Positions 50,621 to 55,818 of a DNA stretch of 64,000 nt are shown here, piece after piece. Source of the DNA: Rhodosorus marinus CCMP1338 (taxonomy: Eukaryota > Plantae > Rhodophyta); assembly GCA_029953675.1 (NCBI GenBank), contig JAMWBK010000010.1, forward strand, positions 682,001-746,000, in the 5' to 3' direction. Below the pieces are notes generated by a model. It was not told the DNA's origin. It saw nothing but the letters and a program-made list of their open reading frames with translations, and made no database searches. Every line of letters begins with the position of its first letter. The stretch's first letter is position 1. The translations under genes and the position numbers were made by a program.

Positions 50621-51742
50621 ATGGAAAGGCTTCCGCACATGATTCGTGGGAAGGAGTTGTTCAAAGACTGTCAACCTGGTGAGGAAGGGCTGAAGTTCTC
50701 TGAGGGCGAGACGATTCTGAGGGAGCGATCGGGTGTTTTCTCGGAGTATGGGAAGAACTGGGCTCTGGATATATTCTGTATTACACACAATGCTGTGAGG
50801 GCGGAGTTTCAAGATCTCTTCGCCATCGTGACGTCGATGGCGCATCGAAAAGAATCGGTTAGCGTCAAGGATATTGAAGAGGTCTTCAACTGGTGGCCCG
50901 TGTTTGCTCAGTTTCTTGTCGAAGTTCTGGAAATGGAGAATACGGTATGATAACGCTCTAATACTCTATCTTAGTTGGGGAAGAAGGTGTTCAAGATTTG
51001 TCTTGCTGATCCTCTTCAAAAAAATCAGATTTTATTTCCTAGGTGGGAGGAAACCATACCTTTGGCCGGTCCAGTGTCTTCTCTGAAACGGGAAGATCTA
51101 AGGAATCGAACTAAACTGGCGCTTGAATCAGTTTCAATTAAGAAGAATACATTCAAGCAAGAACACCCGAGCGAGATATTCGGGCAACTGGTCAAGTTCA
51201 CGGAATCCACTGTTCGGGAGATCGAATCGTTGTTCATGATAGCAGAAGTAGAGACGGTAGCTTTTTTGTTGAAGCAGCCAAAGTTTGAGCGGACCGGTGA
51301 AGGTCTGTTCGAGTTTTTCGCGGCGTACATGCACAGCTTGGTTAACCCCAACGAGTTTGCGACCTTATGGATGCGTGGATTCAGGTCCACTGAACCACGG
51401 AACGAGTTTCGCGAGGTCTTTCAGAAACTGAAGAAGAAAAAGAGATTCGGAAACAGCAAACGTATAGTCGAAGAGTTAGAGGTGACTGAAAGCAGGATTC
51501 AGAAATCCCACTACCAAGTTGTGAGAGAGTTTTGGCGAAATTGGAGAGAGGCTGAGGTGTTCCTAAGTCTCAGCGACGACTGCATCGAGCTTCCTGCATC
51601 GCCAAAAGAACCCAAGGTCGCTGAAGTGCTGAATGTGGAAGAGGAGGTTAATCCAGAGCCGATAGAGGAGTACAAGCCCCAGTTTACTGGATCCAAGTTC
51701 CTCTCGCATAGAAACAAGTTTGAAAATGCCGGGAAGGACTGA
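50621..51742 (+). CDS. Hemerythrin-like (HHE-fold) protein, degenerate metal site, 2 exons
   Basis: WALDIFCITHNAVRAEFQDL..DIEEVFNWWPVF..VLEMENT|ILFP: the first His and the E..LFP pattern are present, the HH pair is replaced. Confidence 0.6.
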
Positions 51743-52006: not shown

Positions 52007-53507
52007 TCAGCTCTCGGGATTGGGATCTCGTCTGAAGGTATTCGAATAAGCAATTGTCATATCTTCCTGCCCGGATGCCAAGACTTCGGTTGCGAGTCTC
52101 TGAATTTCATCAACAAAGTTAAGTTCTCGTGATCGTAAGCCTTCAGAGTGAACTCTCAATGTTGCCTTCTTGTCGACGAGCTCGACGTCCACGTCGATAT
52201 CCTGTAAAGCAGCCGAATTGCAAAAAAGAGCCAGAGGCCAAGGTGAGATAGTGTCTTTTCGCGCACCTCGGAAATAGTCGAAATCTTAAAGAACACGCTC
52301 TACCATTATCGTCGCCATCCTCAGCAGCCTCTGCACAAAGTGGCTCGCCGACTGCCTTGTCTTCATGTAGTAATCATTTTCCAGGACGGTACTGTCCACT
52401 AGCTATGCACGTGGAGGCAAGAGAGGAGCTGGAATCAGTCAAACATCCTGTTGTGCGTCCAGTAAGGCGGCAACTGCGTCCATAGGTGACGACGAGATCA
52501 GGTTTTAGCTCACCTTCCAGTCTCCTCGATTCGCGAGTCTTTCTAGAATCTGATCGTTTGACAGTTTCACTTCCTCAACTTTGTGCATGTAGACGGTCGG
52601 GTATCGCTCGAGAATAACATCGTCTGCACCGATGACTCCTTTGTGTGCTTTTCCAGTGAAGAGGTCATGCGCCATGACACCATCAACAGAAGAAATCTGA
52701 ACGCGCAGCTCGGAAGCCGCAAGTCTCAGCAACGGAAAAATTCCAGATCTAATGGCTCAAAGAAAAAGCAGTCCTGGTGCATCCTAATTCGGTTGATGCG
52801 CGCCTTACCTGTTCAGAAACAATGAACGGGCTGTGCATAGGTTTGTTAGGACTCATCACGAACTCAGCGATGCGATTGCCGTCCAAAGTTCTTATAGGAA
52901 CAGAGTCCTTTGTCCGAAAGGAAACCACGGGGGAGAGGCTTCTAATCGCTGGTAGCTGCATTAACCTCCGGAGCGTGTGTTTCGCTCCCATGTCCGATAT
53001 CTCAAAACATATTTTAGACCCGATCCTGGCCCTTTCGTCCGTCTCGTTGGCGACAATGATCAGGGACTTTGAGCGAGTGGCAACAAGACGCGGTCTTAGG
53101 ATAGATGCTCCGGTGCTCTGCGCGACGAAATTGAGCTCGTCGTCAAACTCAGCCGCATGGATGATGCTCAAATCCAGGTCGGCAAAGCTCTCCGGGCCAA
53201 CTTGCGGCAGCTCAAGCTCGGCGGCGCGATTGTTCATCCGCTTCGACGGCAGAGCGAGCGTCACGTCGACCAACTTGCCAGTTCCAATCAGACGATACAG
53301 CTTATCCATAGCCATCGCACCTATAGAGGGCGACGCGATGCCAATTTTCATCCCACTTTCGACATGATCCTCGATTGCAGATTCCACAGCATCCACAAGG
53401 TCATCACGATCTGCAGCTTTTCGCCGCACCCGCGAACATCGACGGTCTCTGCGGCAGTCAAGCAGGCCACAAAGCAGAGTAGTCGGTGACAGAATAAACC
53501 CAGTCAT
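52007..53507 (-). CDS. Fusion of RpiA-like (ribose-5-phosphate isomerase A fold) and PCD-like (pterin carbinolamine dehydratase fold) domains, probable plastid transit peptide, 4 exons, 391 aa
   Basis: Exons 53507-52809, 52696-52514, 52402-52304 and 52201-52007 are all phase 0 with GT-AG introns. RpiA-like: GMKIGIASPS..DLSIIHAAEFDDELNFV..TLDGNRI..SPFIVSEQISSVDGVMAHDLF. PCD-like: KLSNDQILERLANRGDWKLVDS..SASHFVQRLLRMA..LRVHSEGL. Confidence 0.8.
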
Positions 53508-54418: not shown

Positions 54419-55818
54419 CTAGCTTTCAGTTTGAGGGACGGGCAGATCCTTAAAACGCTCGCTGTTCTCGTAGCCATTCGGTAGAATTCCCTTCAGGTGC
54501 GGGTAGATCTTGTTGTAAGCAGCGCGAATTGTGACTTCTGCTACGAGGGCGGCGTCCGATACCTGCTTCGCTGTTTTCCGCTCATCCTGCGGCCCAAGCT
54601 GACAGATAATAAAGATACAGGCAGCCGCAATGGATACAAGCGTACGACCGTACACCCCATTTAGGTCTCGAGCTTTGTTTGCAAGCTCAGTTGCCGCGTT
54701 CACAACCTTTCTTGGCAAACCTAGAGCACTGCAGCATCGAAGCACCCCATCCTCCATAGATGTATCCGTTCTCGCCGAGGTCGCAATCGTGGACTTCACG
54801 CGCTTGTCAATTAACTTGACAACACGCCCGAGGTCACGTTTCGGCACCTGTGGAGAAAAAAAAGTATCCCGAAGCGAAGCTCAGCAGTGCTCTTGCAAAA
54901 CCGTTTCCGTCAAAAGCAACGGAAAAATTCGACGAGCACATACCCCAGTCATCAGACTTATTTCAATGAACGTTCTGGTCATGTTCTCCCCCCGCAGCGA
55001 CAGTAACAGCACACCAGCAACTATTTGCTTGGTTTCTTCCTCTCGCAGAGATCTCACTCTTGTCCCATCCTCCCTCAAGGTCAGCACATCATAGTACTGT
55101 TTAAACATCTCGTTACAGCGTTCCTGCACTTTGTGCGGGATCGAGTTGCGTTCGCATAGCTTGCTTATCTCCGCGAACACGTCCAAAAGGTAACGATCAG
55201 AAGCAGATATTGTGTGCATGTTTTGGGCTCGATTCAGAGACGACCCTATCCCCCGTCCGCCCTCCATAGAAATCGATGTATTAGCCCCAGATTCCAGTAA
55301 CGGGTTCGCAGGGCCTGGTCAGTATACGAAAGAGAGACCTTGATTAGCTTCCATAGTTCACACATCCTATGCCAAAACAAGAAGGCAACAAAGTCGTGAA
55401 GTCGAAAACAAATCTGCTTGTGCGATACGCTTTCTATCAAAGCTTCTTGTGAACAGACAAAATATAGATGTCATCGACCGCCTTTCAAGTGCGTTTATCA
55501 AGTACGTACCACTAGCACGATTTGGATCTGCTCCGGGCTCATCGTTTGTAAAAGTTCTCCATTCACACCCGAGATCAACCAGTTTTTCTTGAATAACAAG
55601 ACCGCAGCTACGGCAAACGTTCTGACCTTCCTTCCAATCTGTTCGTACAGAAGATACTCGCCTTAAGCACCAGTGTAAATCCATCACTGAAAAGTTGTCA
55701 GACTTGAGCGCTTACCTTCGACAATATCCGGGCTTCCACACTCAGGACATTCCTCGGGAGTGTCTCGCTCCAGCTCTGGAGCGAGCGAAGGTAGCACACT
55801 CGAGTTGATTTTTGCCAT
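54419..55818 (-). CDS. TFIIB: Transcription initiation factor IIB, 4 exons
   Basis: Zn ribbon CPECGSPDIVED..NVCRSCGLVI..GCEWRTF; two cyclin repeats (ERCNEMFKQY..RTFIEIS; RCCSALGL..GRTLVSIAAACIF..VAEVTIRAAYNKIYP). Confidence 0.97.

Follow-up and report, generated by a model that had tools for sequence, protein, structure and literature searches.

What is the use of a protein made of two enzymes that have both lost the residues by which they work? The question is raised by NDN08_003944, a gene of the red alga Rhodosorus marinus CCMP1338 located on the reverse strand of the stretch of DNA analysed here (the window: 64,000 nucleotides, positions 682,001 to 746,000 of contig JAMWBK010000010.1, assembly GCA_029953675.1). 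A preliminary description, made from the sequence of the window, had taken the gene for a fusion of a degenerate ribose-5-phosphate isomerase (RpiA) domain with a degenerate pterin-4a-carbinolamine dehydratase (PCD, or DCoH) domain, and had proposed a role in the assembly or scaffolding of Rubisco in the plastid. The architecture is borne out by our analysis; the proposed role is not the one we favour. Both enzyme families are well known, but the literature searched does not describe a dead RpiA and a dead PCD joined in one protein. The gene appears to be maintained for a functional non-enzyme rather than to be a decaying copy, and its product probably acts as an adaptor or scaffold in the plastid.

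NDN08_003944 is a genuine and expressed nuclear gene of four exons (Table 1), all in phase 0, as follows from their lengths. The preliminary description had joined these exons into one open reading frame (ORF), and the spliced translation is indeed 100% identical to the GenBank protein KAJ8901738.1 (P0002; 'hypothetical protein NDN08_003944'), predicted from the published CCMP1338 genome (PMC10250338). In addition, peptides of 391 amino acids from two other R. marinus strains in the MMETSP collection (P0001 and P0004) are collinear with it and 91% identical. The list of ORFs had shown the gene as fragments of 252, 75 and 61 amino acids, with exon 3 present only as a 37-amino-acid ORF below the default limit of 60; that these three seemingly unrelated fragments are one gene follows from the identical GenBank product and from the junctions of a 2747-nt MMETSP transcript (L002), whose exon 2/3 and exon 3/4 boundaries lie exactly at the predicted positions. 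Of the three predicted splicing events, therefore, those of introns 2 and 3 are documented in this transcript, but intron 1 is retained in it. Any of the three introns would introduce in-frame stops if retained, and intron 1 is less similar between strains (80% identity) than the coding sequence (92%). The isoform that keeps intron 1 and has introns 2 and 3 removed (L002:743-852; P0003) would give a truncated product of 237 amino acids that lacks the PCD-like domain and the last part of the RpiA-like one.

The first of the two domains has kept the RpiA fold. It matches PF06026 (Rib_5-P_isom_A) with an E-value of 1.4e-17 and a score of 64.3 bits (cut-off 26) over positions 6-172 of the 173 of the profile, and its best match in the PDB, using phmmer, is the chloroplast enzyme CrRPI1 (RPI1 of Chlamydomonas; 6zxt, 1.5e-16). 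The AlphaFold2 (AF2) model, based on an alignment of 126 sequences, mostly RpiAs, has a predicted local distance difference test score (pLDDT) above 90 over amino acids 36-265. Foldseek superimposed it on many RpiA structures with template modelling (TM) scores of 0.87-0.92 and root-mean-square deviations (rmsd) of 1.7-2.1 Å (0.90 and 1.7 Å for 6zxt). Among canonical proteins, this part of the protein matches best an RpiA from the red alga Galdieria, with proteins of the plastid RPI3 type next, and on these matches the domain is assigned to the eukaryotic or plastid RpiA lineage.

What has been lost is the chemistry. In CrRPI1, D115 and E137 are proposed as the catalytic residues, while S60, T61 and K155 hold a sulfate that mimics the phosphate of the substrate (PMC7589169). 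In the window protein, the catalytic and motif positions D115, D118, K128 and E137 have become I116, A119, Q130 and P139, respectively; of the phosphate ligands, T61 is replaced by I62 and K155 by D157 (residue 157 is Asp or Ala depending on the R. marinus strain), and only S60 is retained, as S61. Glu120 is also retained. The motif changes listed in the preliminary description (GTGST to ASPSI, DGADE to IHAAE, KGxGG to QSTGA, REK to RPR) were all found as described. Each replaced position is canonical in 112-118 of the 118 aligned RpiA homologues (115-118 for the catalytic and motif positions), and those deviating at the Asp or Glu position are the proteins of the fusion clade together with P0010, P0029, P0062 and P0121. 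The score of the window protein against the NCBIfam equivalog model TIGR00021 is 73.2 bits, below the cut-off of 126.4. With Asp, Glu and all but one of the three phosphate ligands lost, the protein is not expected to isomerise ribose-5-phosphate in the established way; at the level of sequence, the domain is shown to be an RpiA fold without RpiA chemistry, i.e. a degenerate and catalytically dead RpiA. The suggestion that it might still sense sugar phosphates is weakened by the replacement of the phosphate-binding Thr and Lys with Ile and Asp.

Some of the other homologues deserve mention in their own right. The P0010 cluster, from JGI/IMG metagenome contigs, is a separate RpiA-like lineage with SGADE, SGGGG and QQGK in the place of DGADE, KGGGG and REK; it has no PCD domain, and is another candidate inactive RpiA. 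One or two key RpiA positions deviate in P0029 (from Welwitschia), P0062 and P0121. P0008, a metagenomic (JGI/IMG) protein of 478 amino acids, consists of two complete canonical RpiA domains fused in tandem.

Relatives of the whole fusion were sought by an exhaustive search over 1.84 billion representatives, from which the best 150 of 471 matches with E-values up to 0.001 were considered. The fusion is present in a transcript product of 378 amino acids from Compsopogon caeruleus (P0056; UniProt A0A7S1XCU0), which aligns over residues 18-328 of the query and matches Rib_5-P_isom_A at 5.7e-21 and Pterin_4a at 5.6e-20 (71.7 bits, profile positions 2-90 of 91). Pieces of the fusion gene were also found in two Logan contigs, L003 (SRR23287143, 52% identity) and L004 (SRR22824290, 37% identity). 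Their gene models, spliced by hand, show the same four-exon structure: exons 2 and 3 measure 183 and 99 nt, and the introns are placed, codon for codon, as in the window gene. Within those 150 matches, the fusion was confined to Stylonematophyceae-like taxa and Compsopogon. A word-indexed protein search with the full protein, the family alignment and the Compsopogon protein returned Rhodosorus and Compsopogon entries only, and no new members.

These relatives were decisive for the identification of the second domain. Taken alone, the window protein is borderline: it scores 25.6 bits against PF01329 (Pterin_4a), just below the cut-off of 26 (E 1.4e-5, profile positions 2-72 of 91); its match to the NCBIfam PCD model NF002017 is weak, although the whole model is covered, and a phmmer search of the PDB with its C-terminus alone retrieved nothing relevant. 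In contrast, the corresponding domain from Compsopogon matches solved PCDs very clearly (Brucella PCD, 3jst, 6.7e-15; human PCBD2, 1.6e-13). A clade profile of the C-terminal domain, built from Rhodosorus, L003 and L004 with Compsopogon excluded, retrieved PCDs only from the whole PDB (2ebb at 3.9e-4, aligned end to end) and, using hhalign, matched a small PCD profile with a probability of 92% and an E-value of 5.9e-7; against the single Compsopogon sequence, its match was weak (E 0.014). The clade profile and the Pterin_4a match of Compsopogon settle the matter, and the C-terminal domain, judged by these profiles, is a degenerate PCD/DCoH descended from a canonical pterin-4a-carbinolamine dehydratase.

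The PCD motif is reportedly [EDKH]-x3-H-[HN]-[PCS]-x5,6-[YWF]-x9-[HW]-x8,15-D, and in the alignment it is lost in full from the window protein. In the register given by hhalign and Pfam, the H-H-P triplet is replaced by I-D-V, as the preliminary description had recognized in noting the loss of HHP, the aromatic residue by Asp, and the third His by Glu347. The further claim that only the third His is kept did not hold, because the residue in question, H345, lies two residues before the third-His position, is Arg in strain P0004 and is not conserved in L003 and L004. Glu347 (codon 52144-52142, reverse strand), which stands where PCDs have their third catalytic His, is invariant in Rhodosorus, L003 and L004. 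The AF2 model of amino acids 270-391 has a pLDDT of only 33-66, because few homologues are available, and a run on three near-identical Rhodosorus sequences gave a pLDDT of 33. The order of the predicted elements (helices 280-289, 304-326 and 351-369, strands 331-337 and 341-346) is, for a model of such low confidence, compatible with the alpha-beta-alpha-beta-beta-alpha order of the PCD fold. For this part of the protein, Foldseek gave no usable match. As to the C-terminal tail, it is conserved in three R. marinus strains with a ratio of nonsynonymous to synonymous substitution rates (dN/dS) of 0.18, and is modelled by AF2 with low confidence.

The comparison of the four taxa also provides the order in which the two domains would have been inactivated. 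None of the four (Rhodosorus, Compsopogon, L003 and L004) has kept the first Asp of RpiA, its Glu or its phosphate Lys, which indicates that the isomerase had died before they diverged. In Compsopogon, on the other hand, the PCD domain is near-canonical, deviating at a single motif position (HFP for HHP, giving H-F-P...H...D), so that the loss of the PCD motif would be a later event of the Rhodosorus-like lineage. As read from these sequences, the order is RpiA first, before the split of the four taxa, and PCD later.

In spite of the loss of both catalytic motifs, the gene is under strong purifying selection in both dead domains. Between the window gene and strain L002, the synonymous divergence (dS) is 0.26 and the overall dN/dS 0.17; broken down by region, dN/dS is 0.13 in the RpiA-like domain and 0.11 in the PCD-like domain, compared with 1.4 in the first 35 codons. 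The stretches best conserved among Rhodosorus, L003 and L004 are amino acids 41-65 (the former phosphate loop), 111-135 (the former catalytic loops) and 251-275 (the linker between the domains).

The rapidly evolving N-terminus has the features of a plastid presequence. All five orthologue starts available are of the type M-x-[G/S]-F (MTGF, MAGF, MASF, MVGF and MLGF), with an invariant Phe at position 4, and the pLDDT of the AF2 model is below 50 over amino acids 1-24. Plastid presequences of rhodophytes and glaucophytes are marked by a Phe at the very N-terminus (PMC7038456), and the suggestion that the MTGF start is a signature of plastid import fits this rule. The N-terminal Phe, the relaxed selection and the low model confidence in this region make plastid import a reasonable expectation, and the protein is probably sent to the plastid by means of a cleaved presequence.

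Table 1. Features of the NDN08_003944 gene and of its product, with positions in the window (nt, nucleotides).
Feature	Position	Strand	Description	Evidence
Whole gene	52007..53507	-	start to stop codon; 4 exons, 3 introns, 391 codons; NDN08_003944 / KAJ8901738.1	
Exon 1	52809..53507	-	699 nt, amino acids 1-233; 3' end ...GAACAG, followed by GTAAGG of the intron; matching position of exon 1 in L003 and L004	
Intron 1	52697..52808	-	112 nt, GT-AG; kept in one MMETSP isoform (P0003/L002)	
Exon 2	52514..52696	-	183 nt, amino acids 234-294; end of RpiA-like domain, linker and start of PCD-like domain	
Intron 2	52403..52513	-	111 nt, GT-AG; removed in transcript L002	
Exon 3	52304..52402	-	99 nt, amino acids 295-327; likewise 99 nt in L003 and L004	
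Intron 3	52202..52303	-	102 nt, GT-AG; removed in transcript L002	
Exon 4	52007..52201	-	195 nt, amino acids 328-391 and TGA stop	
Putative plastid presequence	53403..53507	-	amino acids 1-35, MTGF...	F4, dN/dS, pLDDT; localisation inferred
RpiA-like pseudo-enzyme domain	52601..53402	-	amino acids 36-265; crosses intron 1	Pfam, PDB, AF2, Foldseek
PCD/DCoH-like pseudo-enzyme domain	52088..52570	-	amino acids 276-365; crosses introns 2 and 3	profile matches
C-terminal tail	52010..52087	-	amino acids 366-391, ...SNTFRRDPNPES; no family match	strain conservation

The reading that we favour, with a probability of roughly 0.6, is that of a conserved and expressed two-domain non-enzyme serving as a plastid adaptor or scaffold that acts by binding. 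Action by binding, and not by catalysis, is suggested by the strong purifying selection combined with the fact that the former cleft and the linker are the best conserved parts. The Phe-4 presequence would bring the protein into the plastid, where it might self-associate by way of its two folds, which as a rule are dimeric or tetrameric, and the re-lined RpiA cleft, the PCD surface, or both could hold a partner or ligand. A stromal partner related to the Calvin cycle or to Rubisco would be the most attractive guess, although it is suggested by analogy only.

Several points weigh against this interpretation. The scaffold role is inferred from conservation and from lost residues, the latter being negative evidence, and the dN/dS values derive from one pair of close strains. 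The fold of the C-terminal domain is deduced from sequence profiles and from the order of secondary-structure elements only, at a pLDDT of 33-66. The conserved, re-lined cleft may harbour a new catalytic or ligand-binding chemistry. Finally, no orthologue was seen in Porphyridium, Bangiophyceae, Florideophyceae or Cyanidiophyceae among the best 150 of the 471 matches, so that whatever the protein does would not be general to organisms with red-type Rubisco.

The proposal of the preliminary description was more specific, namely an assembly or maintenance factor of the RAF2/acRAF type for form ID Rubisco, or a pyrenoid scaffold for Rubisco or Calvin-cycle enzymes. Such a factor would resemble Raf2 of plants and green algae and acRAF of the alpha-carboxysome in being an inactive PCD-fold domain of an autotroph that probably resides where CO2 is fixed. 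In its favour, an inactive PCD domain in the plastid of a red alga would close a gap, RpiA belongs to the Calvin cycle, and targeting to the plastid is plausible. As far as the pyrenoid is concerned, that of Rhodosorus is prominent, and the components of rhodophyte pyrenoids are essentially unknown (PMC13655443). However, known pyrenoid linkers have repeats or disordered, linker-like regions, and nothing of this kind is present in the protein. Compsopogon is described as having no pyrenoids, which also counts against the pyrenoid. More generally, the proposal is an analogy alone. Raf2 and acRAF are single-domain proteins that go with green-type form IA/IB Rubisco, while the window protein has two domains and comes from a red alga with form ID, the Rubisco of non-green algae being of the red type; the Rubisco found alongside Raf2 is of form IA or of the green lineage, and Raf2 has been reported to be absent from red algae (PMC5859369). 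As for the kinship with RAF2/acRAF that had been suggested, both the Compsopogon domain and the clade profile match canonical PCDs. The PDB sequence searches gave no specific relationship to Raf2 or acRAF, with no acRAF chain among the matches even at E-values up to 10, and any RAF2-like role would therefore probably be convergent. The restriction of the fusion, among the best 150 of 471 matches, to Stylonematophyceae-like taxa and Compsopogon also makes a general factor for red-type Rubisco impossible. On balance, we consider the proposal unlikely. A reading in which early-branching mesophilic red algae would have a chaperone or organiser of their own, acting on form ID Rubisco or on a complex of Calvin-cycle enzymes, would require that a dead PCD fold had been recruited independently, in convergence with Raf2 and acRAF, and that the dead Calvin-cycle enzyme provided a second docking surface; we consider it quite unlikely.

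Pseudoenzymes are often regulators of their active paralogues, which speaks for another explanation: the RpiA-like part might form heterodimers with the active plastid RpiA, or dock on an enzyme such as PRK, while the PCD-like domain builds complexes that tune the flux. The descent of the domain from a eukaryotic or plastid RpiA, with a red-algal RpiA as its best canonical match, agrees with this, and folds related to RpiA are found as non-catalytic regulatory subunits in eIF2B, as seen in the weaker Foldseek matches. RpiA is a functional homodimer, and its surface has been proposed for the docking of partners, but the residues of the dimer interface are in general poorly conserved (PMC7589169), and we regard a regulatory pseudo-paralogue as improbable. 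A neo-functionalised enzyme or small-molecule sensor, in which the re-lined cleft (ASPSI / HAAEFD / LRPR) would accommodate some other metabolite, could explain why, within the clade, conservation is highest in the segments that once formed the active site, and why the phosphate-loop Ser61 and Glu120 are retained. In some lineages the PCD domain may even still be a dehydratase, as suggested by that of Compsopogon, which fits the published motif at all positions but one and matches a solved PCD at 6.7e-15. Nevertheless, this explanation is very improbable, because the replacements are mostly non-ionisable residues (Ile, Ala, Pro and Gln) and include a charge reversal from Lys to Asp, a poor outfit for acid-base chemistry or phosphate binding; moreover, residue 157 varies (Asp or Ala) among R. 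marinus strains, and the PCD motif is wholly gone from the window protein. There is, lastly, the prosaic view that the gene is an artefact or is decaying, either as two neighbours wrongly joined or as a pseudogene of an RpiA duplicate. The loss of all the catalytic motifs of both domains would be expected in such a case, and the isoform P0003, which retains intron 1, would stop after exon 1. It is nonetheless extremely unlikely: collinear transcripts of full length are known from Compsopogon and from two further strains of R. marinus, the frame is open without interruption over four exons, L003 and L004 agree with the window gene in exon lengths and intron positions, and dN/dS is 0.11-0.13 in the two domains as opposed to 1.4 in the presequence. 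This view is thereby effectively refuted. Two separate genes, a pseudogene and an active bifunctional enzyme were each considered and rejected.

The adaptor or scaffold that we favour can be set beside the systems it resembles. It shares with RpiA (PF06026, CrRPI1, 6zxt) the full-length homology, the two-subdomain fold and the probable plastid presequence, but it is missing both residues proposed to be catalytic (Asp and Glu), the conserved Lys of the KGxGG motif and, among the phosphate ligands, Thr and Lys, and it carries the additional C-terminal domain. That domain, in turn, aligns end to end over 90 residues with PCD/DCoH proteins (PF01329; 3jst, 2ebb, human PCBD2 4c45) in matching order of elements; unlike them, the window protein has its entire motif (H-H-P ... 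Y ... H ... D) replaced, and whereas PCDs normally are stand-alone proteins of about 100 amino acids, here the domain is fused behind another one. A precedent for a fold of the sugar-phosphate-isomerase type kept as a non-catalytic regulatory or scaffold module is provided by the alpha, beta and delta subunits of eIF2B (a weak Foldseek match, E about 1e-4). This is, however, a distant kinship at the level of the fold only (TM about 0.3), and compartment, partners and architecture differ.

The flanking genes are unrelated housekeeping genes, as is to be expected for a eukaryote. A convergent neighbour on the forward strand (50621-51742; L002:1599-2636), coding for a product of 345 amino acids with no Pfam match, ends 264 bp from the stop codon of NDN08_003944. 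Both convergent genes are contained in the single transcript L002, which points either to overlapping convergent transcripts or to a chimeric assembly. Upstream, on the same strand and 911 bp before the start codon, lies a TFIIB gene (Zn_Ribbon_TF and TFIIB domains; 54419-55818, reverse strand). The other neighbours code for a GNL3/Grn1-type GTPase, a family 25 glycosyltransferase (GT25), a LYAR zinc finger protein and an EFL1-type GTPase, without a functional link.

As regards novelty, the literature searched contained no paper on the RpiA-PCD architecture, nor any on RpiA pseudoenzymes. The view that the architecture was undescribed therefore stands as far as the literature searched is concerned; it needs correction in that the fusion exists in at least four red-algal taxa and is represented by entries in UniProt. 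The names attached to it in the databases are automatic, i.e. 'ribose-5-phosphate isomerase' and '4a-hydroxytetrahydrobiopterin dehydratase' in UniProt and 'hypothetical protein' in GenBank, and the enzyme names on the UniProt entries mislead metabolic reconstruction.

The assembly of Rubisco in plants and alpha-carboxysomes depends on inactive proteins with the PCD fold, and none is known from red algae. As reported in one study, red-algal Rubisco has the best kinetics, and yet its assembly fails in plants (PMC6508576). The components of rhodophyte pyrenoids and of rhodophyte Rubisco biogenesis are almost unknown (PMC13655443). Should the product of NDN08_003944 prove to act on Rubisco, or on the organisation of Calvin-cycle enzymes, it would be a useful lead. 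Otherwise, it would represent a clean case of a double pseudoenzyme in which the order of inactivation, RpiA and then PCD, can be dated.

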